A DNA stretch of 64,000 nt from Macrostomum lignano. Lineage: Eukaryota. The first letter of the stretch is position 1. Each line of letters opens with the position of its first letter. Where the stretch lies: contig NIVC01001310.1 of assembly GCA_002269645.1 (NCBI GenBank), forward strand, positions 284,209 to 348,208, in the 5' to 3' direction. The notes beneath the pieces were generated by a model. That model did no database searches, was not told the DNA's origin, and worked only from the letters and a program-made list of their open reading frames with translations. A program made the position numbers and the translations under genes. Positions 1 through 44,446 of the stretch are shown in pieces.

Positions 1-605
1 CAAGAAATAAACTGAACAGCCTGGCCCAATAGAAGACTAATGGCAGTCCTAGAGCGGCAAAGTTCTGCAATATAAACATGCAAATGGCTACTTGCTTAAT
101 TGGTTCAAGCCCGTATAGTTATTTAAATAGTATGCAACGAATTGCCAAAACGTGCTCAATTCTCGTAACAGAATTTGTTGCCAATGAAGAAGCAAACCTT
201 TCTATAACAAACAGTGAATAAAGTTAATGAAAAAATTGAGGGCAATATCAAAAAAGCTGAAATTGGCAGAAAGGAAGAAATGACCAAGTAAGGTAATGAT
301 GGAATTATATAAAAGAAGTCTATAATAAAGTTCTGCTCCGCCCAATAAAAAAAGAAAACAAAATTAAGTTGTAAAGCTTTGGTTTTATTGTCCAAAACTG
401 AGCACGTAAAGAAATTGTATGAAGTATAGAGTAGCAAATATACCCCGTGCGCCACAAGTGGACGCGAAGTTCGAACGATGTTATGAAGCTACTAAGCATA
501 CACTCGTACGTAAAGGTACTTGTAGATTGCAGGTAGTAATTTCCATGTATTAATTTGATTAAAAATTCATTTTACGATCTGTCGTATCACACGCAATACT
601 TAGCT

Positions 606-1395
606 GTTTAAAGTTCCAGCTCCTGTCTAGAGAGTAATGTTTAATTATCGGGTGTTTAAAGTTCCAGCTCCTGTCTAGAGAGTAATGTGTAATTATCGGG
701 TGTTTAAAGTTCCAGCTCCTGTCTAGAGAGTAATGTGTAATTATCGGGTGTTTAAAGTTCCAGCTCCTGTCTAGAGAGTAATGTTTAATTATCGGGTGTT
801 TAAAGTTCCAGCTCCTGTCTAGAGAGTAATGTTTAATTATCGGGTGTTTAAAGTTCCAGCTCCTGTCTAGAGAGTAATGTTTAATTATCGGGTGTTTAAA
901 GTTCCAGCTCCTGTCTAGAGAGTAATGTTAATTATCGGGTGTTTAAAGTTCCAGCTCCTGTCTAGAGAGTAATGTTTAATTATCGGGTGTTTAAAGTTCC
1001 AGCTCCTGTCTAGAGAGTAATGTTTAATTATCGGGTGTTTAAAGTTCCAGCTCCTGTCTAGAGAGTAATGTTTAATTATCGGGTGTTTAAAGTTCCAGCT
1101 CCTGTCTAGAGAGTAATGTTTAATTATCGGGTGTTTAAAGTTCCAGCTCCTGTCTAGAGAGTAATGTGTAATTATCGGGTGTTTAAAGTTCCAGCTCCTG
1201 TCTAGAGAGTAATGTTTAATTATCGGGTGTTTAAAGTTCCAGCTCCTGTCTAGAGAGTAATGTGTAATTATCGGGAGTTTAAAGTTCCAGCTCCTGTCTA
1301 GAGAGTAATGTTTAATTATCGTCTGTTTAAAATTCCAGCTCGGGAGTGTCTGTAAAATTCCAGCTCCTGTCTAGAGAGTGATGTGTAATTATCGG
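606..1395. repeat. 48-bp tandem minisatellite, ~16 copies
   Basis: Unit GTTTAAAGTTCCAGCTCCTGTCTAGAGAGTAATGT(T/G)TAATTATCGGGT repeats head-to-tail with period 48 (606, 654, ...) and degenerates after ~1320. No spacers. Confidence 0.95.
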
Positions 1396-4051: not shown

Positions 4052-7177
<3,126 letters not shown>

Positions 7178-10100
7178 TATTTTTGATTAATTAATAGATT
7201 TCACAAGACTTCTTTTGAATTAAAAACTCTAAAATTTTAGTACAGAATTTTAAATATTATAAAGGCCATCTATTAGTACTAAGAAAATTGTAATAGGTAG
7301 TTTAGACTTAATGATCTTATGATATGAATTTCATCATGTATATCTTATGAGTCACCAAAGGCACCAAAAGTCTATAGGCACCAAAGTCTTTAAGATAGTA
7401 TGGGCATTTACAAAGGCCCTATATTCTGCATATTTTATCAATGATCTATAAATTGACAATGGCTATGTCATATAAAGGATTTTATATACTTGTAGTAATA
7501 GAGTATAACTTTAAAAGTTAGTATATATTATTAAATTTCTTAAAAGACATCATTATTTCTTACAATAGTAGGCTCATTCCATATAAGATAGACATATTTG
7601 GAAAATAAAAAAAAGTCAATATTTTTGCTTGCCATTGCCTTATAGGCCTATTTTTTTACCAAAAGTTTTTTATGTGCAATATATACAATCTAAGAATAAA
7701 GGAATGGTAAAATGTTGGATTAGTATGTTATCAATTGGCAAAAAGTCATTTTTGTAAACTTTTGGACATTTTTTGAAGCAAAATACATTATTAAGATTTT
7801 GTATCTTTTAAAAACAGATAGAAAGCTTTTGAAGGTTGAAACAAACTATAGATAAAAGTATAGTACTTGCATCATCAGATAAAAGCATTGGTGACCAAAT
7901 AATCTATTATATTTTTAATGTATTAGTACCACAAAGTTACTAAATTGACAGAAAAAATATATTAGGACCATGATGTTACGACCATAAGGCTGCCTTTTCT
8001 TTTGTATCTTTGTCGCATTTTGAGTTTATATATTCTAATAAAAGAGTATGATTTCTAAATATGTTCTTAGTCAAATTTTAAAAATGTATTGCAAAATATC
8101 AAAAATGAAAAATGTTATAAGACTTTTACCTTTTGGTTTCTATATGTCAAAAATCCTGTCGTTACAACCATAAGTGTCATTTAAGGTTTAATAGCATCTA
8201 TACTAATGATGATTTCTATATGAAACTCTATAAATATATTCTAGACAAAATAATCTTTCATTTAAAATATTGGTTTAGTATATTCTATTATTAGATTTCA
8301 TTTTATAAGTAAAAATAGCCTGTCATGTTACGACTGTGCTTATATGGAATGAGCTAGTAAGCACTTTTATCAAGGAGCAGAATAGGTCAGTAATAACACA
8401 TTTGATTTATATGGCGAACCCTATTGGAGTGATTTTAAAATAAGTTGTGGATCCTTGTGCTAAGCATATAAATTTGCAGGTTTTTGGAAATAAACAGGTA
8501 TTAAGGCCAACCTCCAAGTTTCAAAGTGTACATGCTTAATGATTGGGAAGTCAAGACTAGGCCTGCCCTTGCCCACAGCATTAGTAATAGCACTTCCTAC
8601 ACTAGTGGTAGGCAGTATATCTTAGTACAGATGAGGTGGCTTGCTAGCTAGAGTCACCAAAAGTACAAGTCACTTAGATGGACTAGGCTAGCAGTCATAC
8701 ATGTGCAACAACTGGTTGAGCCAGCTGGCTAATGAGGGGCCTGGCCAAAGTAAGTTGCAAAAATGCCAACCCAAAAAATAGACATTTACTAATTAGCTGG
8801 CAAGGCATTTAGTCTTAATAATATAGTCATAATTATTCTTGCCATTTACCTAAAACTATGTTAATGTTTGCTTTGGTTTCCTTCATAGATAAATTAAATA
8901 TTTGGTCAAAAAGTGGTGGCAGTGCAGCAAGTCTGATTAGGGGGAGTGGCAGCTAGGTAATTATCTCTTCCTAGCAAATTTTTAGAATTAGAGCAGTGCA
9001 GTATGCAAAAAGTTCAAAATAGTGCATATAATGAGCATACACTAAAAATTATGGTGGGGCACCTTATGGAGATATGGAAGGGTCATCACCCCCCTAAGGG
9101 GATAGAGGATGGTCATTTTGGGGCAGCAGCCCCCTCTGCCCCCTGCCTATAGTGCTATTGAAAAAATAAGTTATAAAGCCAGTCAATAGTAGGATCATGT
9201 ATGTGTGCACTAGAAGTTACCCAAAAATATGCAAATATTTTATTTTTTAATAATTTTTAATTAATGTGCTGGGTATACTAGTGATGGATTGAAATTCAAT
9301 TTCAATTTCGATATTCTGAATTTTGAAACTTATTTTGCATTGAAATAATTTTAATTTTGAATTTCAACACCATTCATAAAAAATCATTTTGAATTTTGGT
9401 TATATTTTAACAATTTAGACATTGATGATCATGCTACACAAGTAAGAAAATCTATAGGAAGTGAAAGGAAGCGCGGTTCAAAGACTCAGTGGGGAGGTGA
9501 GAATTGCCTTTTCTACAAGAAAAGATTGTGCGGGGCACACACCGTTCCAGGCCTTGTGCTGCACCCACCTCAACCTCTACAAGCCCACTGGCTAAACTCA
9601 TCAGCGTGAATTTTAATTGGCTAAAGACTTAAAGCCTTAATGAAATGGATATAGGCTACTTATATCTAGATCTTCAGCTTAAACAGTGGTAAAGTATAAT
9701 AACTTCTACTATATTTCTATATACGAGTGTATAATACATAATACACCAGCATTTTCTATTTTGTATTTTTAAAGTAAGTTAAATCTTAAGTATTCTGGTT
9801 TAAACATATCAAAGATATTTTTTTATAAAACATGTAAGCTCATACAGGCAGAGGCAAGGTGTTAACCTTTTTGCATGATTAGCAAAAAAGTAAAAATTTG
9901 TTAAGCTCAAAAAATTCAATTTTGATTTCAATTTCAAATTTGAGTTGAAAAATAATTTCAATCCATCGCTAGGGTATACCAGGCAAAAAATGCATTAGTG
10001 CACTAGGTGTGCCAGTGGTAAGTCTGCAATCTCTTAGTCCTTAGCTTATTCTAGCTTTAACACTAACATTTATATAAATTAAAAAAGTGCAAACATTTTT

Positions 10101-12185
10101 TTGATAAAACTATTATTCTTTATATATGTACAATATATTTGCAAAAGAATTGTTAAATTATATAGGCCTACTTACAACCTAATGCTATATAAAAAAATTT
10201 TTTAACTTCTTTTAAATACTAAAATTTAAATAAGGCCTAACTTAAATGTGATTTATTGTGCTTATATATGTGCATACCCCCTGATTTATACTGGCCATGC
10301 AACTTATCTATAAAAGAAACCAAGGCAAAATTAACACAATTTTAGGTAAATGGCAAGAGTAACTATGACTGTCTTATCAAGGCTGAATACCTTTCATCAT
10401 CTAATTAGTACTACTTTATATTCTTTTAAGTGGGCATTTTTGCAACTTACCCCTAGTCTACCACAATTTAAAGTGGCTAGATTAGCCTGGTCAGACAGCA
10501 TTTGCACATAATATATACTTGTATTTAAAACAATAGTGGCATGGTGCAATCTTTTCAAAGTCTAAAATAAGTATGCTATATAATCCATGCTATATACCAA
10601 AATTCAAGCATATATGCACCACAAGACTTTTTAAAAAAATTGTGCTAGCATGCACTAGGCCTAGCTGTCAAATGCTTGCCAGAAATTTCTAGCACAAATT
10701 ATATGATCTTATATATGATGGCTTGTGTTGTATAAGCCAAGGAGATTGCACATGTATAATAAGCAATAATACAAAATCACATTGGTAACTTGCTTGAAAC
10801 CATAGTAATAGTAAGCCAGCCAATATGTAAATTAATAATCCTTATATAAGAATATATAACTACTATGTATCTACTAACCTATCTAGATGACTAGAGGGGC
10901 GCATGACTAAGACCGCCACACACCAAAACCACCACAGCTATTACTGGCTACTAGTATTAAGGGGGAGCTACCAATCTTCTAGTATTACTATTCCTCTCAT
11001 AGGTTCTTTTCTTGCTGCTGGCTCTCCTACCCACTTATCTCCTCTCTAGCACTATCTAATAATATATAAATTCAAATTTCTCCCTTAGCTCTCCAAGTGT
11101 GGCAGACAGTCTTGGTCCTACACCTCTAGAGGCCCTTTAAAATTAAACTAATGTAGACCAAGGATTCAAGGAAGAGCAAAAAGAAAAGAGCAGACATGGC
11201 AAGCAAAAGAAAATTTAGTCTAGAAAAGCAAATATAGAAAAGACAAAACAAAACAACAAATTTAAAAAAATGAATAGGCCTAAAAAAACTAAAGTAGGCC
11301 TATGTTAGTTATAGATAGCAGATAATTTCAAAGGTTGCATTTATGTTATGATGATTTTTATTAAGGCAAAAGGTAGGGCTGTAGCAATATAAGATTTATA
11401 TTTAATTATAAATTATATTGCCTAAGTTCAATAAACTTATTATAGATCATTTTAATTCAATAAAAAAGGTGATAGGCCTAATAGAATCATTCATGTCATA
11501 CTATAATGGAATCCTTTAACCAGAGCCATAGGGCATAAAATAATAGTACTAGTAGCGTAGCTGTCTACTAATAGGCCCTCTAGGCTTATTTCAATAGGGC
11601 ATAGGCCATAGGACATAGGCCTAGGCCTATGCATAGCCTGTAGCCCTATAGCCATGGGATTAGGCCTAGCTAGGCCTAGTGGCTAGCTAAAAAAGCTTTT
11701 TCATTTGTTTTCCATTTATATATATCTATAACTGCTTTAAACAAATAGGTAACCATTTATTATAGAAGTTGTAGGCTTATTCCAAATAAAGTTTGAATAT
11801 CTTGCAAAAACATTACCAAACAAAATTTCAACTCAAATCAAATCCATTGATGTAGGGCCTAACTCATTGAAATTGAGATAATGAGGTAGCTTTCTTGACT
11901 TCATTGAATAATTAAATCAAAGCTTTGAAAAATAGCCTAGCGGTTGAATAATGAAGATAAAGATCCAGCCTCCCACTCTATTATCAAATTATTCAGTCAG
12001 ATCGAAAGCGCAGAGCCTAGAGTATGAGAGTTCACAAATTCTAATCTTTAGCAAACACGTTTTGAAATAGTGCACAGTTTTTTATATCTTCGTTAAAACG
12101 CGATCGTGAACTTAAAATATTCGATCGATTACCATTATCATTTTATCAACATGACTAGAGGAAACGTCAACTTAAATCCGAAGTT

Positions 12186-22677: not shown

Positions 22678-25600
22678 ATGTCATCGCAGAGTTCGTCACA
22701 CCATTCGTCAAGTTCGTCAAAGTCAAGTTCGTCGTCAAACAAGAGGGTATTACTACTACTTCTACTACTACTACTGCTGCTATTATTACTATTATTAATA
22801 CTACTACCATTACTATTACCGAAAGCACGAACATACTTCTACTCCCACAGCAGCACAAGTCCTCTGATGGCCCGACCCCGGCGAAACAGGTCAAGAGCCC
22901 CGATGCCACTGAGACTGTGTCGCTAAACGCTGCTGCAGACGCCTCCAAGCCGTTCACTCCAGCGCTCAGTCAGCAGTATCGCGAGCGAATCCGGCCAGTG
23001 CTGAACAGCATCGATCGTCTCCGGTCGCACGGCCTACAAAATGAGCTCCGCCTGCCCACAGTAGCCGTTGTGGGCGACCAATCGGTAGGCAAATCCAGCG
23101 TGCTGGAGGCCATCTCGGGCGTGGACTTGCCGCGCGGTACCGGCATTGTGACTCGCTGCCCGCTGCAGCTGAGCATGCGCTCAAAGCCGACTGGAGACTG
23201 GACTGGTAGGATTAGGTGAGCATTTTTATTCTATTAATTCACGTCCTTCGAACTCCTTTCTGAATTTACATTAAATACACATAAAAATATCTTGCAAATA
23301 TTAGCAAATTTTGACAGATTTGACAGCGCGGGTATTTGTCTTGCTAAAAAACATTTTCTCAATTACACTGCATGATATGAAATACCAGCAATGAGGCTAT
23401 TCTGCCCTTTCTACTGACCCCTGAGTACATACAAGAGCGCCAGTAATGTACACAGGCACGCAACTCCCACACACTCACACAAGGTGCACAGGGGCCCCGC
23501 ACGGACAACCAACTGGCCAATATTTGTCCCAAATGAATGTGGCCGCACAGGCCCGAAATGAACTAGCTTCCTTTCTGCTGAAAACTAGCAGGCACTTTAG
23601 ATTGAAATGAAAAAATCAAAGTTGAAAAGTAAAGGGGATGTGAACTTGGGATTCAAAAATGGAGCCCGAAACATTCTGTCCCGATTTCTCTACGCTAATC
23701 CTTTCATTTGGAGCCAAAAAGCTGCCGTTATGCAGAAAAAACCCGGCCACTTTAGCATTTGAGGATCCCTATGAGGAGAAATGGGATTAATGGGGAAGAA
23801 TTCATGTAAACTTCAGGTTCCAGAATGGAGCATGAAGCATTGGGTCCCGGTTTCTCTACGCCAATGCCTTCATTTGGAGCTTCAAACGCTTAAAAAACGA
23901 GATGACCATGATATACGCTTCCCTTTTGGCACTTTTCATGTTTGTAGGAAGAATAGGAGCGATAGTAATGTTATTTAATGCCCCCATTATGTTGTTTCTT
24001 AATAATGTTTATGTTATCTTCCCCACCCCAGCTCTCATTGTGTTCCCCCGTTTTGCTGGAGACTTAAATAGCGTCAAGGGGGGTTTGTATCACACATATT
24101 AGACCGACGATTTCTACCTCGACGAAGCGGAGGTTAACCCGAAGTTTTGAGACGGAGGGTGGTAAACATCATTTTCGCACATTTATATCGTGTCAAAGGT
24201 GCAAAGCTCCCCCACAACCATTTCTCCCCATAGAGATCCCCAAATGCTAAAGTGTTCGGGTTTTCGCATGACGGCAGCTTTTTGGCTCCAAATGAAGGGA
24301 TTGGCGTAGAAAAATCAGGACCGAATGTTTCGAACTCCATTTTGACTCTTAAGTTCACATCCCCTTTGTAAACTGCTGCTGGGCAGCACATCATTTGCCT
24401 TCGTCGAGAAAACGTTCTTCCAGTACTCCAGGCTGCAAAATTACAAAGATACGTGGGTTAAAGTATTTCAAAAGTCATTCCAATGTCTTCAAAGTTAACC
24501 AGCTGTAATTTCACAAGTGTCGTTTCCTGCTCTCCTAAGAGCCTTTTCTGACAAGACACCCTTCCCCGACAACAGCTACCAAAATCGCAAGGGCGAGCAC
24601 GTCGAGCGTGAAATATCGAAAAAATGTGAAGTAGACGAAATGGTGCGCAAAGTACAAAACGAAATCACTGGCGACTCGAACGGCGTATCTACGGAGCAGA
24701 TCGACCTGACCATTGAGAGCGCGGATGTGTCCGACCTCACCCTGGTTGACCTGCCCGGCATTGCCAGGTACTCTGAGAAGAATCCGAAGATCAACGAGGT
24801 TACCAAGCAGCTGATTCTGTCTTACATCAGCCAGGACCAGGTGATCATCCTGGTTGTTGTACCCTGCAGCGTGGACATCGAGACAGTGGAGGCCATTGCT
24901 CTAGCCAAACAGGTGGACCCAGGGGGCACCAGGACGATCGGAGTCCTGACTTGCCCGGACCTGACCAACCCTGGCAGCGAGGAGGACATCAAAGCCATCG
25001 TCAACAACCAAGGCAGAGTGCGACTGCACAAAGGCTTTGTCATGGTGAAATGCCGCAGCCCCAAGGAGCTCAGGAACAACATTAGTCTGAGCGAGGTGGC
25101 CAAAATCGAGGAGGATTATTTCAAAAACGATCCGCACTTCAGCCAGCTGCCAAAGGATATTGTTGGCACAAAGACGCTGGCAGAGAAGCTGACAAATGAG
25201 TTGTTCAAGGCAGTGGCTGCGGGCATTGAGACTCTGGAGGAGAGTCTGAAGGTAAGCCAACTGAGAAAGTCAGCTCCACGGGGGAGTTGGCGAACTTCGG
25301 TCCTCAAAGCCTTTCCATTCGGCCTTTAAATACTTTAAATACTTTATATGCAATCCGGCCCACTCAAGGTTTTGTATTTTCTCAGCTCTTCTCCACTCTC
25401 CCTTCTTCTCTTCACTCTCCCATATTTTCTCTTTCCTCTCTCTTCCCTCTCTTTTCTTTTTTAATCTCTCCCTCCTATCACCTATAATCGACTAATCCTG
25501 TCTCTTCTGATATAAGACTTGATGTGGCTGAATGCTTTCAGGTCAGATTTCTATTTGGCGCTTGTTTTCATTTGCGCATGCGTGCTTAGGGTCAACCGAA

Positions 25601-27199
25601 TGTACACGTAATCGTTTTGATTTGACAGCTCGCAAACTGAACTAAATTAAAAAAATTATTTCTCACAGAGCAAGCTGAAGGACTACGAAGAGGAGCTGAA
25701 AGACCTGGAGGACAGTCTGTGCGAGACAGACAGCGACAAGAGAGCCTACCTGATGCGCAAGCTGCAGCAGTTTGCCTCAAAAGTACACGCCGCCACGGCC
25801 AGTCCAGAAGATGAGCGGGACGCATTCGCCACGGGCAGCTCCAGCAGTCTGTACAGCAGCTGTCTGACTAATTGTTCGAGCTTTGGCTACTCTGTGAGCA
25901 GGAGCCAGCCTGGTGAGCTGTTTATTCATTACGAGTTTCCTGGCGCACGGGGCGCTTCTATGCGAAATGCAGTATAGATTTTAGTTGTAAATACTTGTAA
26001 CAACCATGTATCATAATCGGCGACTTTTTTAGCACAAAGTCCATGCACATTATAAAATTTCATTCTTTATGCTAAACTGGCCACGCGAACTCGACGTTGC
26101 TTGACGTCCATGGCGAACATTTTATTTCAGCCTGGATCATTGACTACTCAAAAAAAGTGCCCAATGGTGTGTCCGACGAGGTGCAGCTTAGAAGAGGACG
26201 CGAGCTTCCGACTTTCACATTTGTGTTCCCTGTTGTTCAGAAGATTGTATTCGAAGAATATTTGCCAAAAATAGAATACCTGGCGAAGTGGCTACTCGGT
26301 GAGGTGCAGTCTCAAGTTACTAAATCGCTTGAAAACCTGACCGAAAATTGTTTCAAAGCGTTTCCAAGGCTGCTGCTACTTGTGAAAGAAACTGTTGTCA
26401 AGGCGATCGAAGCCCAAGAGGCTGAGTGTCGTGCAGACCTGGCTAAGCTGATTGCACACGAGCGTCGCTTGTTCACTCAGGACAGTCAGTTTTCGGAAAA
26501 ACTGCGTTACGTTACAGAGCAACAAAAGGAGTTGGCTAAGCAACCTGTTCCTCCGTAAGTAACTGCTTTAATTGGGCGTTTACCGAAGGATTTTAGGAGC
26601 TGACGCCCCTTGTTCCTCGCACTCAAAGAAGCGTCCCTAGCTACTACGAAACTCCTGGCTATGCCTCTCACATTTGGATCTAAAAACACTACAAATGGAA
26701 TAGTTATTATATATCCTATGTAAAAGAGGAGGTTCCATTTTTCAGCCCAACCCTTTTTTCGGGTTTCGGAGCCCCGGCAGCATCACAGCCGATCCGAATC
26801 TCTCGCGAGCCTCAAGCAAGCCCAACCACAAGGGCGTCTCAAGGGGGCTTCAAGAGAGCCGAGCCTCAAGTGAGCCGAGCCTCAAGCGAGCCGTCACATG
26901 AGGAGCAAATTCGCCTGGGAACCAAAGCCTACCTGCTGCTGGCCTGTCAGCGCATCTCGGACACGGTGCCAATGTCGGTGCTGTGCCACATGCTCGACGG
27001 CGTGGCCACAAAGCTGGTTGCCGAGATAACTCGACTGTTTGCCGGCGGCAGCCACCAGGTGGACATCCTGGATCTGCTGCGAGAGAAGGAGGGCAGGCAG
27101 CGGAGGAGGCGCTACCTGATTCAGGCTGCTTGTCAGATGCGCGAGTCGCGGAAGGAGCTGCAGAGCGCCAAGCAGAACCGCATGCTGCTAGAGGACTGA
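22678..27199 (+). CDS. Mx: Mx-like dynamin-family GTPase, copy 1 (intact, 743 aa); exons 22678-22746, 22851-23215, 24576-25251, 25669-25912, 26131-26554, 26746-27199
   Basis: G1 [10 protein letters not shown]2 [14 protein letters not shown]3 DLPG, G4-position TCPD, stalk motif RGRELPTF and [18 protein letters not shown]. There is no PH or PRD domain. All six exons join in phase with GT-AG introns (2232 nt). Confidence 0.92.
23631..24367. mobile_element. Non-autonomous element with ~155-bp terminal inverted repeats in Mx copy 1 intron 2
   Basis: The left arm starts AAAGGGGATGTGAAC (23631-~23785). The right arm (~24215-24367) is its reverse complement at roughly 85% identity. A partial third copy lies at ~23820-23885. 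Confidence 0.75.
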
Positions 27200-28795: not shown

Positions 28796-28980
<185 letters not shown>

Positions 28981-29505
28981 ACACTTAGGCATACTGATGC
29001 CACCCTTCGTAACATGTCAGTAGTACGAAGGGTGCACATGAAACTAGCTCTTACTGCGAGAAAAAAAGCACAGAAAAAACAGGTTTCCAGGAAATAGTTC
29101 ACACGCACATCTGCAGGAATTTTTTGGAAATTTTTGGCGCAGTTCATTATATGTACATGGATGAAAAGGGTGTACAGTTTATCATTATCGTTCCCTGTAG
29201 AAATTCCAACGGACAGTGGTGTATCAGTGCTTAAATGGGAGTGTGAATATGCACTGTACTGCCCGTTGTTCTTATTCAAAATATTTTGCCCTGCCGGCAA
29301 TTTGTTTTCTCTGACTTTGAGTTTCTAAAACGCAAGTCATTTTTTGGATTCTGTATAGCAGACGTACTATACAAACCTGAAATGTCATCGCGGAGTTCGC
29401 CAAATTTGTCGTCAAACAAGCGGGTAAATCATTTTTGTAGTGCTTAGCCATAAAATTTACCGCGCTACATTTGAGTAAAAGACTACTACTTTTCCACTGC
29501 TACTG

Positions 29506-29540
<35 letters not shown>

Positions 29541-30367
29541 GTTACTACTACTAGCAGTACGAACAATACTACCTTTTCTCCCACAGCAGCACAAGTCCTC
29601 TGATGGCCCGACCCCGGCGAAACAGGTCAAGAGCCCTGATGCCACTGAGACTGTGTTGCTAAGCGCTGCTGCAGACGCCTCCAAGACGTTCACTCCAGCG
29701 CTCAGTCAGCAGTATCGCGAGCGAATCCGGCCAGTGCTGAACAGCATCGATCGTCTCCGGTCGCACGGCCTACAAAATGAGCTCCGCCTGCCCACAGTAG
29801 CCGTTGTGGGCGACCAATCGGTGGCAAATCCAGCGTGCTGGAGGCCATCTCGGGCGTGGACTTGCCGCGCGGTAGCGGCATTGTGACTCGCTGCCCGCTG
29901 CAGCTGAGCATGCGCTCAAAGCCAACTGGAGACTGGACTGGTAGGATTAGGTGAGCATTTTTATAGTTCTATCAATTCACCTTCTTAGAACTCCTTTCTG
30001 AATTGACATTAAATGCACATAAAAAATATCTTGCAAATATTAGCAAATTTTGACAGATTTGACAGCGCGGGTATTTGTCTTGCTAAAAAACATTTTCTCA
30101 ATTACACTGCATGATATGAAATACCAGCAATGAGGCTATTCTGCCCTTTCTACTGACCCCTGAGTACATACAAGAGCGCCAGTAATGTACACAGGCACGC
30201 GACTCCCACACACTCACACAAGGTGCACAGGGGCCCCGCACGGACAACCAACTGGCCAATATTTGTCCCAAATGAATGTGGCCGCACAGGCCCGAAATGA
30301 ACTAGCTTCCTTTCTGCTGAAAACTAGCAGGCACTTTAGATTGAAATAAAAAGTCAAGTTGAAAAGT

Positions 30368-31060: not shown

Positions 31061-32831
31061 GTAAACTGCTGCTGGGCAGCACATCATTTGCCTTCGTCGA
31101 GAAAACGTTCTTCCAGTACTCCAGGCTGCAAAATTACAAAGATACGTGGGTAAAGTATTTCAAAAGTCATTCCAATGTCTTCAAAGTTAACCAGCTGTAA
31201 TTTCACAAGTGTCGTTTCCTCTCTCCTAAGAGCCTTTTCTGACAAGACACCCTTCCAACCCCGACAACAGCTACCAAAATCGCAAGGGCGAGCACGTCGA
31301 GCGTAAAATATCGAAAAAATGTGAAGTAGACGAAATGTGCGCAAAGTACAAAACGAAATCACTGGCGACTCGAACGCGCGTATCTACGGAGCAGATCGAC
31401 CTGACCATTGAGAGCGCGGATGTGTCCGACCTCACCCTGGTTGACCTGCCCGGCATTGCCAGGTACTCTGAGAAGAATCCGAAGATCAACGAGGTCACCA
31501 AGCAGCTGATTCTGTCTTACATCAGCCAGGACCAGGTGATCATCCTGGTTGTTGTACCCTGCAGCGTGGACATCGAGACAGTGGAGGCCATTGCTCTAGC
31601 CAAACAGGTGGACCCAGGGGGCACCAGGACGATCGGAGTCCTGACTTGCCCGGACCTGACCAACCCTGGCAGCGAGGAGGACATCAAAGCCATCGTCAAC
31701 AACCAAGGCAGAGTGCGACTGCACAAAGGCTTTGTCATGGTGAAATGCCGCAGCCCCAAGGAGCTCAGGAACAACATCAGTCTGAGCGAGGTGGCCAAAA
31801 TCGAGGAGGATTATTTCAAAAACGATCCGCACTTCAGCCAGCTGCCAAAGGATATTGTTGGCACAAAGACGCTGGCAGAGAAGCTGACAAATGAGTTGTT
31901 CAAGGCAGTGGCTGCGGGCATTGAGACTCTGGAGGAGAGTCTGAAGGTAAGCCAACTGAGAAAGTCAGCTCCACGGGGGAGTTGGCGAACTTCGGTCCTC
32001 AAAGCCTTTCCATTCGGCCTTTAAATACTTTAAATACTTTATATGCAATCCGGCCCACTCAAGGTTTATGTATTTTCTCAGCTCTTCTCCACTCTCCCTT
32101 CTTCTCTTCACTCTCCCATATTTTCTCTTTCCTCTCTCTTCCCTCTCTTTTCTTTTTTACTCTCTCCCTCCTATCACCTATAATCGACTAATCCTGTCTC
32201 TTCTGATATAAGACTTGATGTGGCTGAATGCTTTTAGGTCAGATTTCTATTTGGCGCTTGTTTTCATTTGCGCATGCGTGCTTAGGGTCAACCGAATGTA
32301 CACGTAATCGTTTTGATTTGACAGCTCGCAAACTGAACTAAATTAAAAAAATTATTTCTCACAGAGCAAGCTGAAGGACTACGAAGAGGAGCTGAAAGAC
32401 CTGGAGGACAGTCTGTGCGAGACAGACAGCGACAAGAGAGCCTACCTGATGCGCAAGCTGCAGCAGTTTGCCTCAAAAGTACACGCCGCCACGGCCAGTC
32501 CAGAAGATGAGCGGGACGCATTCGCCACGGGCAGCTCCAGCAGTCTGTACAGCAGCTGTCTGACTAATTGTTCGAGCTTTGGCTACTCTGTGAGCAGGAG
32601 CCAGCCTGGTGAGCTGTTTATTGATTACGAGTTTACTGGCGCACGGGGCGCTTCTATGCGAAATATAGATTTTAGTTGTAAATACTTGTAACACATACTT
32701 GTAACATTAAATACTTGTAACAAGCTTGTATCGTAATCGTCGATTTTAATCTTGCTTTTGTTTTAGCACAAAATCCATGCACAGTTTAAAAAATGTTTCA
32801 CTTTATGCTAAACTCGTCGTTGCTTGACGTC

Positions 32832-35800
32832 TGATGTGGATGGACTCTTATTAGTATATCCATGTCTATGGCCCTGACCTCCACCGCCTACGTGCTAAGA
32901 GGCAGGGCGATTAAATATTGTTTTAAGCTCCTTGGCTCGCCACCAGAGCAGCCCAAATTACATTATACCAAAGCATATAACATGGCATCGCAAGCAGGCA
33001 CTGAAACCGTGGGCTAAAGCTTCTGGCAAAGAAACCACAAGATACCCCCAAAGCAGCAGCGCTCTACGTCGGCATCGCCTTCAAGGCAGAAGCCAGAAAA
33101 GTCGGAACGATCATCAGCAGCATCAGCAGCATCATCAGCAGCATACTCTTGAGGCATACTTCGATTCAGTTAGCATCCAGCACGAGGAATCAGACAGCAT
33201 CCACGTAACTCGGAAGAAAATGGCAGCTCGACGAGCTTGCATGTTGAACGCAGTTACATCTGCTACCTTCTCGAAGTATAAGAATCTACCTCTGACGGAT
33301 CAACAATTCAAGGACCCAGAGATTGTCATGAATTTCATCAGAGATCACGTACTCGGACAGGTTAATATCATCGTAGAGAGGAACAGGTTCTGGAAACGGC
33401 AACAAAATGACGGAGAAAATTTTAACGACTGTCATGCAATTGAGGGACCTGATGCGAACATGTAAGTTCTGTAAGCATTCCAACGACCTACTGAGGGATA
33501 AAATTGTGCTATGAGTACGAAATCCGGAGACAATCAAGCATCTATTAGCACAACCAGATCTCTCTCTCTCGCTGACGCGCTGACAATATGTAGATCAGAG
33601 GAAGCCTGTGAGATCCAAAAAATGAAATCTGCACAGCTTCACAGGTGTCCATAGTGCGCAAACACCGAGGAAAAACTCCAGGTGGGGCTCGATCAAAGAC
33701 TCCAGAAGCAAAGAAATGCACTGCCTGTGGTAAAGGGCGACATCAGCGCTCAGAATGTCCCGCCAAGGACAAGAAGTGCTTTAACTGCGGTCGCATTGGA
33801 CATTTTGGTTCCATGTGCCGGTCCAGTCGCAGCACTGGTCATCCGGATAAAAGGCGACCACCGAGAATCTCAACTTTGGTTTCTACACTGGAACCCGCAA
33901 CCCCAACAGTAGTAGTCTCGATAAATGGGGAGCAGCTGGAAATGATGCCCGATACGGGATCCAATATCGATCCAATCCGAGAATGCGATTGCAAAAAGCT
34001 CCGCATCCGTGTTGCACAACTAAGGCATGACGCCATATTTCCTAAATCAGCCAGTGGACAGTTCATTAAGAGTGACGGCAATTTCTCCGCCACAATAACG
34101 CTGAACGGGAAGCACGCAGCGACAAGGATTCATGTGCTGAAGAACTTGGTCGCGCCAGTGCTGTCCTGGCAGAGCTGTAGAAAACTGGGAATCATCCCTA
34201 AAGAGTTTCCAAGTCAGATAAACCAGATAACTCAGGTTCTGACGAATGACGGAAGAAAACATACAGAACTGGATTTGATCCAAGAATTCCCGAGGGTCTT
34301 CGACGGAGTAATTCGGCCGATGAAGGGCGAAAAATTTTCGATTGTGCTCAAAATAGGACGCGATCCCATTTTCCGTGAAGACGCCACGCCGGCTATCACT
34401 GCCACTGCATGAAAAACTTAAAAACGAACTCGATGCCTTGGAAAGACAGCAAATTATCTGCAAAATAACAGAGCCGACACCCTGGTGCGCTCCAATAGTC
34501 GTAGCCCCGAAGAAGGGCACTGACCGAATTCGTCTTTGCGTAGATTTTAGAGAGATAAACAAATACGTTCTGAGACCTCGATACTAATCACCAACACCAC
34601 TGGAAGTTGTGGCCAGCACCAATGTATCCAACGCAGAATGGTTTACAGTTGTTGATGCATTGAAAGGATCCCATCAAGTACCACTCCACGAAGACAGTAT
34701 GCCACTGACAACATTTATTACTCCTTATGGAACATACATGTTCAGAATGGCACCTTTCGGGATCAGCTCTATCTCAGAATATTACAACAGGAGACTGGAT
34801 AGTGTTCTACAGGGCTTGAAAGATACTCGCCACATTGTGGATGACTGCATAATCGCAAGCGCCGACTACGAAAGCCAAATCCAAGCTGTTCGCGAATTTA
34901 TTTATCGGTGTGACGAGAGTGGAATATCATTGAATAAGAAAAAATTTGTCTTCGCCAAGAAAATGTAAAGTTTGCTGGATTTATCCTTACACTAAAGTGC
35001 TATCAGGTGGACCCTGACATGACAGCAGCCATTGCTCAATTCCCTGAGCCATCAAATGTTACAGAATTACGCGCATTTATGGGCCAAGTGAATCAAATAG
35101 GACCATTCACAGATTCGATCGCAGAATGTACCTCGATATTAAGACCTCTACTGAGCGCGAAGAATTCATTCATCTGGAACGAGGAGCACCAAAAAGCCTT
35201 CGATAAGGCACGAATCCATCTGTCTAAAGTCCCATCATTCGCATACTACGATCACACGAAGCCAACCGCACTGCACACCGACGCATCAAGGTTGAAGGGA
35301 CTCGGATTTGTTCTCAAGCAGCAACAACCTGACGGCGCCTGGCGAATGATTCAGGCAGGATCACGGTTTCTGGCTGACGCGGAGACGCGATATGCTATGA
35401 TCGAGCTCGAGTTTCTAGCAATTGTGTGGGCTTCGCAAAAATGGACTCTCTTGTTTTTTAAGGACTCGATTCATTTCAAATCGTGACTGACCACAAGCCA
35501 CTTATTCCGATATTAAACGGCTACCAACTAGACCAAATCGAAAACCCGAGGTTGCAGCGCCTTCGTGCCAAGCTTAATCGCTACAACTATGAAGCAAAAT
35601 GGGTACGAGGTAAAGACAATGTATATGCCGATGCACTATCAAGAGCTCCGATTGCAAATGCAACTGAAGAAGATCAGATTGATGAGAATCAAGCTCTAAG
35701 TAGTGTGAATTTGTTGACTATGGTAATGGAAGATAGGGAAATTGACTTTAACATGAAGAGAATACAAGAACACGTAAAGAAGGACACAGAAATGCAAGAG

Positions 35801-37256
35801 CTTATCCAAGTAATAGAGAATGGATTCCCGAACGATAAAGCTAATCTTCCAGTTAATCTAAGACCGTACTGGCACATTAGACATAAGCTTGTCGTCTAAA
35901 ACGGAGTCGTTCTCAATGGATGCCGTTGTATCATCCCTAAAGAAATGCGAAAAGAAGTTTTGAGAACACTACATTCAAGTCACCAAGGTGCTACTAAGAC
36001 CAAAGCAAGAGCAAGAATGGTCGTCTATTGGCCCAGCATGGAACGTCAGATCGATGACACAATAAAGCAATGCAATGCATGCCAAGAAACCCGTCCAAGT
36101 CAGGTCAGAGAACCGATGTTGCCGAGAACTACACCAGCAAGGTGCTTCCAGGAAGTTCATGCTGACTTTTGTGAACACCGCGGCAGGCAATTCCTAATGA
36201 TAGTGGACGGATACTCTGGATGGATCAACATATGGAACTTCGGACAAAATGCTCCGGTTTACAAGCTGATTAACGCGTGCCGTGAGCTATTTTGTCAGAC
36301 AGCTGTACCGGAATTGTTCTGGTCAGACTCAGGTCCTCAGTTCGAGGCCAGCGCATTTGGTAACTTTTTGAAGAGATGGGAGTCGAGTCCAGATTCTCAT
36401 CCCCATACCACCACCAAAGCAACGGGAGAGCCGAAGCGGCAGTCAAGTCAGCCAAAAAGATCATCAGAGGATCGTGGGATTATCGCAACAATGACATAAA
36501 CAAGGACAAAATGGCGGAAGGAATACTTATCTATAGAAACACACCTATGTATGACGGACGCATTCCTTCTATTATGCTGTATGGACACCCAGCAAGAGAG
36601 ATTCACTCCTGCTCATCGAAGAAGCTTTAATCCCGAATGGTACAACACGATTAAACAAATGGAGGACACAGCATCAGAAGTTCACGAGGCTGTGGAGCAA
36701 ACAAGTCCAAGAGAAGCCTCGATGGAATCCGAATAGGGTCGACTGTAGTTCTTCAAGAGCCAACAACGAAACTGTGGCAACGGAGAGGAGTAGTGGTAGA
36801 GGTCGGAAAAACACCGCGACTACCTGGTAAAGTTGGCGAGCGGCAGAATACTACGGAGAAACCGCATTTACATACGGCCAACATTGCCACTGACCGCCGA
36901 CAACTGGAAAATGACAAAGACGACAAACGGCGAAAGTACAAGACGTACGGAGACGACTTGTACTACGACGGCCAATCAACCAAGCAAGGAGAAACCTCGA
37001 AGTAGCTCGAGAGCAACGAAGGGCATCCCGCCCGCCCGACTCCAGTACAGTAGGCTAGGACATCCAAAAGTTAATTTTGTCGAGTGATAAGGACACTGAA
37101 TTGAAAGGGGAGATGATGTGGATCGACTCTTATTAGTATATCCATGTCTATGGCCCTGACCTCCACCGCCTACGTGCTAAGAGGCAGGGCGATTAAATAT
37201 ATTGTTTTAAGCTCCTTGGCTCGCCACCAGAGCAGCCCAAATTACATTATATAACA
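32832..37256 (+). mobile_element. Full-length Ty3/Gypsy LTR retrotransposon, Mag-like; LTRs 32832-32982 and 37114-37256, 5-bp TSD ACGTC
   Basis: TG...CA LTRs of ~150 bp are near-identical. PBS TGGCATCGCAAGCAGG at 32983; PPT GAAAGGGGAGA at 37103-37113. ACGTC flanks both ends (32827-32831, 37257-37261) and is single at the empty site in copy 1. Gag has tandem knuckles CTACGKGRHQRSEC/CFNCGRIGHFGSMC, followed by PR (DTG), RT (VDD), RNase H (TDAS) and IN (HHCC, D-D-E) in Gypsy order, with several frameshifts and stops. Confidence 0.95.
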
Positions 37257-39567
37257 ACGTCCATGGAAAACTCTCTATTTCAGCCTGGATCATTGACTAC
37301 TCGAAAAGCGTACCCAATTATGTGTCGGACGAGGTGCAGCTTAGAAGAGGACGCGAGCTTCCGACTTTCACATTTGTGTTCCCTGTTGTTCAAAAGATTG
37401 TATTCGAAGAATATTTGCCAAAAATAGAGAACCTGGCGAAGTGGCTACTCGATAACGTGCAGTCTAAAGTTACTAAAACGCTTGAAAACCTGGCCGAAAA
37501 TTGTTTCAAAGCGTTTCCAAGGCTGCTGCTACTTGTGAAAGAAACTGTTGTCAAGGCGATCGAAGCCCAAGAGGCTGAGTGTCGGACAGATATGGCTAAG
37601 CTTATTGCACACGAGCGTCGCTTGTTCACTCAGGACAGCCAGTTTTCGGAAAAACTGAGATACGTTACTACACAATGGCAGGAGTTCCTAGCGACACATC
37701 GTACTCCTCAGTAAATAATTGCTTTGAATAGGCATGGTGCCTTCGGACCTGGAGCCCGTTGGTGCAGCAATGTAAAATTCAGTCCATCCTAATACAAGAT
37801 CCTTAACCATTTCTTGCAGGCGGCTGCCAGCACAAGCCGCCTCAAGCGACCCATCAAACGAGGAGCGAATTCGCCTGGGAACCAAAGCCTACCTGCTGCT
37901 GGCCTGTCAGCGCATCTCGGACACGGTGCCAATGTCGGTGCTGTGCCACATGCTCGACGGCGTGGCCACAAAGCTGGTTGCCGAGATAACCCGACTGTTT
38001 GCCGGCGGCAGCCACCAGGTGGACATCCTGGATCTGCTGCGAGAGAAGGAGGGCAGGCAGCGGAGGAGGCGCTACCTGACTCAGGCTGCTTGTCAGATGC
38101 GCGAGTCGCGGAAGGAGCTGCAGAGCGCCAAGCAGAACCGCATGCTGCTGGAGGACTGAGACAAGCGCCTCTATTTGAGATGAAAAATGGAAGACTGTTC
38201 ATGCGAACACGAATTTACCTAAATTTATTTTAACTATCTTTGAAGTGACCACAACTAATACGAGTATACCTTTGAACGGAGACTAACAAAAGTACTTTTG
38301 AATGGTAGCTACATGCCACCTCGACCCCGACTGAACAATTTGATACTTTAGAAATAACCCTGACGACCCCAACTACAAGCGTATCTCGGAACTCTTGAAC
38401 TCTGGTGGAACGGAAAACTTTATTAGAAATGTCTCAAAAATACCCGAAAATGTTTATCAACTACTTACAGTACTCCTATTCATCTGCTTGTATCCATTTA
38501 TAACCAGTTTTTAACCAAGTCTTGTAAGCTTTGACGAAGTTTACAAGCAGCATCAATTTTTTCCTGTTTTGTCACAGCCTCAGTTTTAATTAGTATTGCA
38601 TAAATTCCATTTCGCAAAAAATTTGGTAAGTAGTCGTAATAAATGACCCTACAAGCATGATCGGAATCTTTTTAGTCATAAATGTTTAATTAAAATTCGC
38701 ACTTGAGCACATTCTCTTCTCTTTCCTACTTAAAGTAGCCGCTTATAGAAGATAATGAAATTAATTATCGCTAAAACAAAATCTGATCAATTTTAAATTA
38801 TTAATAAATACACTTACTTCAGTTTTGCGATAGTTGCGCATATGTCCCGAGGATCCCGAAATTATGGTATGAAAAGCTATTGTTATCATTAGTTATTTCC
38901 CTCAAAATTTAGGGCTAGTTTTTTATTCAAGCTACGAACGCCAACTGGAAGCAAGCAAGTACAAAGTACAAAAATAGACGCTAGGCTAGACATGAATTGC
39001 TTTATTGTCACGGCAATTCTACGGTTTTTCCATGGATTTTCCGACACAAAGTTCCCTTTTCTGCCGACAACTGAGTGCATTGCAACAATATTGGCATGTT
39101 GTACTAAGGTATATCAAAATTCAGGTATGCGCTCGTAATTTTTGCTTGCGACAATTTTGGACAGTCTTCGATAAGTAACGCATAAAAAAGACAGGCTTAG
39201 ATACACAAGAATTCAACTGCAATTGATAGTTGGTGTATTTACAAATTTTACAGATCCTATGATGAAGCATAAAAAGCAGCTGCGCTTGTATGGGGCCAAT
39301 TGTTAAATGTCTTTAACAAAACTTTTTTTCTGAATAAATATCGCATTATAAAAAAATGAAATTTACAATAAATTACGGAATTAAAAACATCCGAATCGAA
39401 ATGCATCTGTACACATGATCGTTTTGCTCGGTGGAGCAGCATGACGAACCATAAATACATTCATGGCTACTATTAGACATGGATTCGCATTGATATCTAG
39501 AAAAAATATCTACAATGAATATTCGTGCTTTCTGTCTTTGTTTCGTAGCTGATAGTTCAGCGCCTAG

Positions 39568-42535: not shown

Positions 42536-44446
42536 TCAGTCATCAGTCATCGACAGAAGCATCCTTAGTTCATTAACCAGCCGCAGTCCATTGCAACCAA
42601 AGCGAATCACTCTGCTGCTGGCATACTTAGTCGCTGAATGGCTTTCCACGACGCCAAAGTCACCGCTAGAAGATGACTTTGCTTTGGCCAATCTACAGAA
42701 ATATGTGTCGATGCATTACATTTATATGCAGAACTTGCAATTTATTGTATCAAAGGTTTCTTTACAGTGTCATTTTTCCTTGAGCTTTCTAAGGACTTAA
42801 GATCTCTGTGTTTTGAGTCCATAAAAACTTTAGGGCTTAAATATATATTTTTTAATGTCAACATATTGACACTCAAGTACTCCGACACCGACACAACCGA
42901 CACCGACACACCCGACACACCAGACACAAACATACCCGACACAAGCACACCCGACACAAAAACACCCGACACAAACACACCCGACATCTGAAACCAACAC
43001 ACCCGATACAGACACAACCGACACCGCACATCCGACACTGACACACCCGACACCGACACACCCGACACCAACACGCCCGACGCAAACACACCCGAAACCG
43101 ACACACCCGACACCGACACACACGAAACCGACATACTCGGACACCGAAACACTCCAACAACACACTCCGACAACAAAAATCCGACACCAACACACTCCGA
43201 CACATCGACAATTAGCTCACCTAATTGCCCTCGTGAATGCGGAGCAGGCATTCTTGCTCACTGGTCTTCTATTGACCTTCTGCCAGAGCATCCCAGCGGT
43301 TTCTCTATCGAGAATTTTGAAGTACTCAATAGAACCGCTCCGTTCTTGACCGTTGACGTCGCAGAACACTAGGATTCGACAAAAGCATTTACGACTACTC
43401 AGCAGCACAATTAGTATGAAGTGCAAAACGTTCGGACGATTTAGCGCCGCAAAGCCGAATAGCTTTCCCGAAACAAGTTCGATTACGAGTAGAATAAGTA
43501 CTTTTATCAACGAATCAAGGACGTCATGCTGAATTTAATCAATAAAACTTTACCCACCCATTTTCTCTCTAATGTGCGTCGCCAAACGATCCAGAGTTTC
43601 TTCTCGAGCTGTCATCGTGTAACCCGGTGGCTGGTCATCGGTGGCAATGCTCACAGATTCCCAGGTCGAGGTAGCCGGTTGGTTTACTGCCGATCGGCCG
43701 CAACTTTGGATGATTGGTAGATTTGGAAGGCTGGGCAGCTGGTCGACGGCAGTTTGACAGGTGACTGGTTGCTGCACTGTGGTAACACTGATAGGGAATG
43801 CTTGAACACCGCAGTTAAACTGTTGCACTGTGGTAACACTGATAGGGAATGCTTGAACACCGCAGTTAAACTGTTGCACTGTGGTAACACTGATAGGGAA
43901 TGCTTGAACACCGCAGTTAAACTGTTGCACTGTGGTAACACTGATAGGAATGCTTGAACACCGCAGTTAAACTGTTGCACTGTGGTAACACTGATAGGGA
44001 ATGCTTGAACACCGCAGTTAAACTGTTGCACTGTGGTAACACTGATAGGGAATGCTTGAACACCGCAGTTAAACTGTTGCACTGTGGTAACACTGATAGG
44101 AATGCTTGAACACCGCAGTTAAACTGTTGCACTGTGGTAACACTGATAGGGAATGCTTGAACACCGCAGTTAAACTGTTGCACTGTGGTAACACTGATAG
44201 GGAATGCTGAACACCGCAGTTAAACTGTTGCACTGTGGTAACACTGATAGGGAATGCTTGAACACCGCAGTTAAACTGTTGCACTGTGGTAACACTGATA
44301 GGGAATGCTTGAACACCGCAGTTAAACTGTTGCACTGTGGTAACACTGATAGGGAATGCTTGAACACCGCAGTTAAACTGTTGCACTGTGGTAACACTGA
44401 TAGGGAATGCTTGAACACCGCAGTTAAACGGTACTATTGTCTGTTC
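42536..44446 (-). CDS. Divergent ETS-domain factor B (5' end and one acceptor unresolved; repeat exon frameshifted as assembled)
   Basis: Exon 44446-43558 carries 17-aa repeats then REETLDRLATHIREKM. The ETS exon ends at 43221 (GMLWQKVNRRPVSKNACSAFTRAIR). The last exon 42692-42536 contains SRVIRFG. Intron positions match A, C and D. Confidence 0.65.
42880..43205. repeat. Degenerate (ACACCG/ACACCC)n low-complexity tract in an ETS-B intron
   Basis: Imperfect GACACC/ACACCC repeats. The V/C/S/G-rich and T/D/P-rich ORFs here are artefacts. Confidence 0.85.
43772..44428 (-). repeat. 51-bp minisatellite (~13 copies) encoding VQQFNCGVQAFPISVTT
   Basis: Unit GCAGTTAAACTGTTGCACTGTGGTAACACTGATAGGGAATGCTTGAACACC. 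Three units are 50 nt (deletions at ~43947, ~44099, ~44208). Confidence 0.95.

Follow-up and report, generated by a model that had tools for sequence, protein, structure and literature searches.

Loop L4 of human MxA is disordered and carries a set of rapidly evolving residues (540, 561, 564, 566 and 567), and an aromatic residue at position 561 is needed for restriction of orthomyxoviruses (PMC12047444). Gene conversion between mammalian MxA and MxB is confined to the bundle signalling element (BSE) and the GTPase region, reaches the introns and spares the regions that determine specificity (Mitchell et al. 2015, PMC4687636). Mx genes predate interferon and have expanded in the flatworm Macrostomum lignano, which encodes at least six Mx proteins, placed in the Mx clade by a published phylogeny (PMC11789081). 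Here, we describe the last 64 kb of the M. lignano contig NIVC01001310.1 (assembly GCA_002269645.1), a stretch of 64,000 nucleotides that we call the window, in which two Mx-type genes lie head to tail and differ in the segment equivalent to part of loop L4, long in copy 1 and short in copy 2.

Multiple Mx genes in M. lignano, and the evolution of L4 and conversion between Mx paralogs in mammals, are thus already known (PMC11789081, PMC4687636, PMC12047444). The main text of the 2025 study of the M. lignano expansion contains neither "loop L4" nor "L4 loop", and that study describes neither L4, a tandem arrangement, conversion nor a broken copy (PMC11789081). What our analysis adds is the tandem arrangement with its conversion tract, a set of three loop types on a near-identical scaffold, the origin of the long loop from a repeat and a damaged second copy. 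With moderate confidence, we attribute the contrast between the two loops to a stretch that gene conversion has not homogenised, in which a short repeat expanded out of frame.

Two tandem Mx genes that differ in loop L4

Self-comparison of the window and a tblastn search with copy 1 revealed exactly two Mx-type gene copies, which match each other in three blocks (22752-26002/29482-32693, 26104-26577/37257-37733 and 26879-27667/37839-38622). Copy 1 was modelled from open frames and splice consensus as a gene of six exons (Table 1), and its product of 743 aa is 100% identical to the deposited M. lignano protein PAA69582.1 (BOX15_Mlig021727g2). The same tandem pair, together with the same retrotransposon, is present at a second, homeologous or allelic locus of this assembly (contig NIVC01001656.1, here L001) with 93-99% identity to the window. 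L001 ends within exon 5 of its copy 2, and the comparison covers copy 2 up to there.

Both window genes are Mx-family genes, as the original prediction had stated, and members of the published M. lignano expansion. A search of the PDB with the copy 1 sequence matched MxB (E 6e-83) and MxA (E 8e-82) much better than dynamin-1 (E 1.6e-42). The AlphaFold model of copy 1 has long stalk helices, and its top fold matches were MxB (5uot, 4whj) and MxA (5gtm, 3szr). The closest relatives outside the flatworms were vertebrate and abalone Mx. Pfam recognised Dynamin_N (E 3.6e-41), Dynamin_M (residues 285-578) and GED (642-733) on copy 1 and no further domain, i.e., neither a PH nor a proline-rich domain. 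The G1 (GDQSVGKSS) and G3 (DLPG) motifs of copy 1 are both present, and the G4 motif of both copies is TCPD in place of the canonical TKPD (codons 270-273 of copy 1, 24944-24955). TCPD occurs in every Macrostomum-type Mx retrieved, including P0006, P0007, P0008, P0010 and P0012, whereas the motif is TRPD in Owenia and TKPD in vertebrates and abalone; the exchange could affect nucleotide binding.

The variable segment comprises 64 residues in copy 1 (E581-H644) and 27 in copy 2, and translation reproduced exactly both peptides on which the original prediction was built. In copy 1 it begins just past the end of Dynamin_M and extends to the start of GED. With the C-terminal 275 aa of copy 1 alone, phmmer found no match in the PDB, and a profile of relatives was needed. 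Built from 20 relatives, this profile aligned end to end with human MxA (3zys_B, E 2.5e-269) and placed the segment opposite MxA residues ~547-574, between anchors at MxA 529-542 upstream and MxA 575-584 (EEIFQHLMAY) downstream. This stretch includes 561, 564, 566 and 567, all but residue 540 of the five rapidly evolving L4 positions chosen for mutagenesis (PMC12047444). The AlphaFold2 model of copy 1 (mean predicted local distance difference test, pLDDT, 74.6) has helices at residues 530-568, 571-588 and 644-692 and a low-confidence coil at 589-643, with pLDDT <50 for residues 593-639. Alignment and model together confirm the proposed equivalence: the segment matches the C-terminal part of MxA L4 and links stalk helices alpha3 and alpha4 in front of the GED helix. 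As in MxA, it is predicted to be disordered, and no other internal segment varies as much among the close paralogs. The insertion point, the stalk tip at the junction of middle domain and GED, is the one at which dynamin carries its PH domain; the flatworm protein differs in holding no folded domain there, with no Pfam match at 578-642.

The distance between the QD and AY anchors flanking the loop is 85 aa in copy 1, 48 aa in copy 2, 45 aa in a third close paralog (P0003) and 32-63 aa in 17 further relatives (13 Mx of other animals and four more distant paralogs of the Macrostomum type). Because the value of copy 1 exceeds those of all 19 other sampled relatives, its long loop is the outlier and is taken as the derived state. 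P0003 carries a third loop type (MQKQSPHFVFQGPTALAASSDPSH, protein sequence), and all three types end in ASS(D/E)PS(H/N)EE. Within the copy 1 loop, the motif LFSGFGAP (26755-26775, residues 596-602) resembles both the WDFGAF around the critical F561 of human MxA and the SGFGF of an Astyanax Mx (P0021). The P0003 loop contains FVFQGP, and the part of the copy 2 loop encoded by exon 6 has no aromatic residue.

At the DNA level, the contrast between loop and surroundings is less absolute than had been claimed. Most of the segment is indeed unalignable between the copies, but exon 5 ends with 12-13 loop codons that are collinear, with ~46% of the bases differing and one codon gained or lost. Intron 5, of 191 nt in copy 1 and 109 nt in copy 2, had been called unalignable as well; this holds past its first 22 nt, beyond which no local alignment scores above 16 (mean of shuffled sequences 15.9), whereas the 22 donor-proximal nt are 82% identical. 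Of the flanks, described as nearly identical, the right one fits that description (99%), but the left one reaches only ~93% in DNA and 91% in protein. The right edge of the divergent island is sharp and lies at 26879.

Such a difference could be an artefact of the gene models if other or alternative splice sites made the real loops alike. A model from an older assembly (P0123) does join exon 5 to an internal in-frame AG in exon 6, which leaves out 29 residues. This AG is preceded by a weak polypyrimidine tract, and the shortened loop of P0123 is still unalignable with that of copy 2. In contrast, the acceptors of our models follow strong polypyrimidine tracts, with canonical GT-AG sites, and the deposited models at the two loci share the same junctions, P0121 at L001 using the splice sites of our copy 1 model. 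We regard an artefact of this kind as extremely improbable.

Gene conversion around a divergent island

Divergence between the copies is distributed very unevenly along the genes. Over exons 2-4, the synonymous divergence (dS) is 0-0.02, no higher than between copy 1 and its L001 counterpart, and with their introns these exons form a block of 99-100% identity between the copies; in most alignment windows, its introns show 0-1% substitutions. Exon 4 is identical between the two copies yet differs from L001. In exon 5 ahead of the loop, dS rises to 0.138 and the nonsynonymous divergence (dN) to 0.049, and in the 12 alignable loop codons the proportions of synonymous (pS) and nonsynonymous (pN) differences reach 0.77 and 0.36. 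Behind the loop, dS is again as low as 0.027 over 99 codons, and the last 100 codons with the 3' untranslated region are about 97-99% identical.

With W1 and W2 standing for copies 1 and 2 of the window and L1 and L2 for their counterparts at L001, eleven sites in 25124-25878 have W1 = W2, differing from L1 = L2, whereas four sites in 22921-24610 have W1 = L1, differing from W2 = L2. The tandem paralogs undergo concerted evolution: they share derived states in a contiguous tract that includes introns (Table 1). The near-identical flanks of the loop are largely the product of gene conversion. Because both genes and the retrotransposon recur at L001, the tandem duplication arose before the two loci separated. 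Partial gene conversion keeps the copies similar, and the loop with intron 5, saturated or unalignable, is the one island left unhomogenised, probably by escape from conversion.

The retrotransposon is a degenerate element of 4.4 kb with long terminal repeats (LTRs), inserted into intron 4 of copy 2 in the sense direction. The two LTRs, of 136-138 nt, are ~98% identical to each other, and the fragmented frames of the element match the Pfam families zf-CCHC (gag zinc knuckle), RVT_1, RT_RNaseH and integrase. L001 has the element too, with 98.9% identity, and the insertion is therefore also older than the split of the loci. It sits where the strongly homogenised 5' block gives way to the older 3' block.

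As in mammals, the homogenised region comprises the BSE, the GTPase domain and here the first half of the stalk, with introns and with one discrete tract, while the N-terminal region and L4 remain distinct. The flatworm pair differs from the mammalian one in that the C-terminal GED part is homogenised too, in that one partner is frameshifted as assembled and in that the genome holds near-identical duplicate loci.

A repeat array in the long loop

The exon 6 part of the copy 1 loop contains a degenerate head-to-tail array of a unit of ~16 nt. Tandem Repeats Finder reported a period of 16 with 2.8 copies at 26850-26893, and five TCAAG cores fall in 26812-26886 where 0.14 would be expected, with none of 5000 shuffles (0/5000) reaching five. 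Copy 2 has a single TCAAG unit (37842, frame 0), which matches the last unit of copy 1. As 16 is not a multiple of 3, the five units of copy 1 are read in three frames (2, 2, 1, 2 and 0, in order) and encode differing peptides (EPQAS, EPQVS, ASSEPS). An alignment of the two loops as proteins fails because the out-of-frame units encode different peptides. The net length gain in the copy 1 loop is 114 nt and in frame.

From the arrangement of the units, the extra length of copy 1 is largely a local expansion of a unit that is single in copy 2, and slippage may have been the mechanism. The flatworm loop differs in this respect from L4 of MxA, as it varies by repeat expansion and by insertions and deletions (indels) instead of point substitutions.

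Two other sources of sequence were considered and rejected. Intron 5 of copy 1 is not a repeated element, as neither it nor the island has a further copy in the window or in L001 besides the homeologous one; neither has a match in Rfam. An acceptor shift, suggested by an apparent likeness of the copy 2 intron (GCCTTCGGACCTGGAGCCC...) to the start of exon 6 in copy 1, was discarded since the likeness is no better than with shuffled sequence.

Rates of change and the question of selection

Between the window and L001, the loop-coding DNA of copy 1 differs at 3 of 192 nt and intron 5 at 3 of 191 nt. In the 12 loop codons that can be aligned between the copies, there is no excess of nonsynonymous change, unlike in primate MxA L4. 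That synonymous divergence in the loop equals or exceeds nonsynonymous divergence points, as far as these codons can tell, to old divergence or non-homology and not to selection on amino acids. Exon 1, a serine-rich, low-complexity N-terminus, is equally divergent between the copies (43/74 identity). Since it is as divergent as the loop, fast change is here a property of disordered segments in general. The loop probably behaves as a weakly constrained disordered linker that evolves at an approximately neutral rate.

By analogy with vertebrate Mx, the loop probably sits at the exposed tip of the stalk, where it would contact targets or membranes, and with such a position different loops could change what the protein binds. 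A rival explanation, in line with the original prediction, sees in the two loops alternative modules for target recognition: diversifying or balancing selection in a conflict between host and virus would keep them distinct, with the enzymatic core homogenised by conversion. The loop stands at the position of L4 in MxA, a determinant of specificity in primates (PMC12047444; PMC4687636), each type of loop recurs with hardly any change in other loci or assemblies, the 114-nt gain remains in frame although built from out-of-frame 16-nt units, and all three (3/3) loop differences between the loci are nonsynonymous. Furthermore, the conversion tracts stop on each side of the loop, a pattern that matches mammalian MxA/MxB with conversion limited to the BSE and GTPase region (PMC4687636), and motifs of aromatic residues and glycine like the MxA WDFGAF are found in copy 1 (FSGFGAP) and P0003 (FVFQGP), though not in copy 2. 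Nevertheless, the alignable codons show no nonsynonymous excess, the loop changes between loci at the rate of the intron, the low-complexity exon 1 has diverged just as far, and copy 2 is frameshifted in its P-loop in the window and unannotated at both loci. For these reasons, the two specificities and the arms-race signature that the original prediction had read from the loop are not supported, and we consider maintenance of the loops by such a conflict unlikely.

State of the second copy

Copy 2 as assembled lacks one nucleotide in its P-loop codons, with a stop 20 codons later (Table 1). This deletion is absent from copy 1, from both L001 copies and from the older-assembly predictions P0002, P0122 and P0123. 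In exon 3, two compensating indels 40 nt apart recode 14 conserved residues of the G domain and leave the frame open. Neither copy 1 nor, as far as readable, the two L001 copies contain such indels. Private small indels number three in exons and three in introns of copy 2, versus none in exons and seven in introns of copy 1, a distribution consistent with relaxed constraint on copy 2. Neither at the window locus nor at L001 does the NCBI annotation include a gene for copy 2. A firm call of a pseudogene was rejected, because the ratio of indels to substitutions is odd; the chances that pseudogenisation of copy 2 at the window locus is real seem to us roughly even.

Weighing the origin of the two loops

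Taken together, we think it probable that the two loops represent an unconverted island combined with out-of-frame repeat expansion in a weakly constrained disordered linker. Several points weigh against this. No relationship could be detected between ~228 nt of copy 1 (26577-26804) and 106 nt of copy 2 (37733-37838), and the array leaves both stretches unexplained. A single replacement event would likewise account for the sharp right edge of the island. Between the loci, rates are compared from three changes, all of them nonsynonymous and too few for a test. With regard to the apparent loss of constraint on copy 2, this copy has just 2 private exon substitutions versus 3 indels, whereas the neutrally evolving retrotransposon has 34 substitutions to 5 indels; the three single-base indels could be consensus errors of a long-read assembly, and short-loop predictions with intact P-loops exist from the older assembly (UniRef A0A1I8G020, A0A1I8IZS0 and A0A1I8J8V1).

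The unrelated stretches and the sharp edge are what one would expect if loop and intron had been replaced in one copy by a single non-homologous event, by conversion from a third, unsampled paralog or by repair, i.e., if a true cassette exchange had taken place. Both stretches lie between flanks that are at least 93% identical, and the M. lignano Mx genes, at least six in number (PMC11789081), offer possible donors. However, neither the window nor L001 contains a donor, and the loops of P0003, P0006, P0008 and P0010 match neither copy. The left boundary is gradual, passing from collinear codons saturated with changes to the similar donor-proximal nucleotides of the intron, and the array explains part of the extra length locally. 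Such an exchange is very unlikely in our view. The cassette-like replacement put forward in the original prediction gives way to a largely local 16-nt array on the side of the loop and, for the contrast with the flanks, largely to gene conversion.

Features of the locus

The features discussed above are listed in Table 1. At L001, copy 1 (9677-12099, compared with 22851-25912 of the window) is ~640 nt shorter over exons 2-4, with large deletions in the introns. All its exons are intact, yet the deposited model P0121 begins at MRSKPTG and omits the P-loop exon. The serine-rich N-terminus encoded by exon 1 has 23 codons in copy 1 (region 22678-22850) and 14 codons in copy 2 (region 29382-29586), and the following intron 1 consists mostly of an (ACT)n/(ATT)n microsatellite. 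In mammalian Mx proteins, the N-terminal region is the other known specificity region (MxB). The window also contains several large tandem arrays, one of which sits between the two Mx copies.

Table 1. Positions of the two Mx genes, their loops and further features in the window (position 1 is its first nucleotide).
Feature	Position	Strand	Remarks
Mx-like gene copy 1, long loop	22678..27199	+	Model from open frames and splice consensus
Copy 1 exons	22678-22746, 22851-23215, 24576-25251, 25669-25912, 26131-26554, 26746-27199	+	Six-exon model
Gene-conversion tract between copies 1 and 2, discrete	25124..25878	+	Minimum extent; end of exon 3, intron 3, exon 4
Copy 1 variable segment, first part	26517..26554	+	Codons 581-593; predicted end of stalk helix alpha3
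Copy 1 intron 5	26555..26745	+	191 nt, phase 2, GTAAGT...TTTTTCAG; canonical sites
Copy 1 variable segment, second part	26746..26899	+	Ends in RASSEPSH; predicted disordered
Degenerate head-to-tail array	26805..26893	+	Unit of ~16 nt (GAGCCGAGCCTCAAGY); TCAAG cores at 26812, 26839, 26850, 26866, 26882
Internal in-frame AG in copy 1 exon 6	26831..26832	+	Use as acceptor would drop 29 residues: QPVPP/ASQGGFKR
Mx-like gene copy 2, short loop	29382..38159	+	Frame broken as assembled
Copy 2 exons	29382-29423, 29587-29950, 31271-31946, 32365-32608, 37284-37710, 37820-38159	+	
1-nt deletion in P-loop codons of copy 2	between 29822 and 29823	+	GDQSV/GKS; stop 20 codons later
Compensating indels in copy 2 exon 3	-1 between 31336/31337, +1 at ~31377	+	14 conserved G-domain residues recoded
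Degenerate LTR retrotransposon, copy 2 intron 4	32832..37251	+	LTRs 32832-32967, 37114-37251
Copy 2 variable segment, first part	37670..37710	+	TQWQEFLATHRTP
Copy 2 intron 5	37711..37819	+	109 nt, phase 2, GTAAAT...TCTTGCAG; canonical sites
Copy 2 variable segment, second part	37820..37859	+	RLPAQAASSDPSN; single TCAAG unit
Tandem array	605-1341		48 nt x15 (98%)
Tandem array	4613-5424		(TATC)n, 0.8 kb
Tandem array	5406-6787		273 nt x5 (99%)
Tandem array	28796-28979		(CAGA)46, between the two Mx copies
Tandem array	43773-44429		51 nt x13 (99%)

Implications for Mx biology

As it stands, this is an ordinary fast-changing disordered loop in a family under gene conversion. It is quite unlikely that the flatworm keeps two or three L4 recognition loops on a conversion-homogenised Mx core, one of them invented by 16-nt repeat expansion, under selection by viruses; if true, an invertebrate would show, independently of interferon, a counterpart of the division of labour between mammalian MxA and MxB. 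With moderate confidence in the local origin of the long loop, the locus would be a clear example of a disordered loop that gains new sequence through out-of-frame repeat expansion. Finally, it constitutes a natural pair or triplet of loop variants on a near-identical scaffold, with which the use of this Mx surface can be tested.

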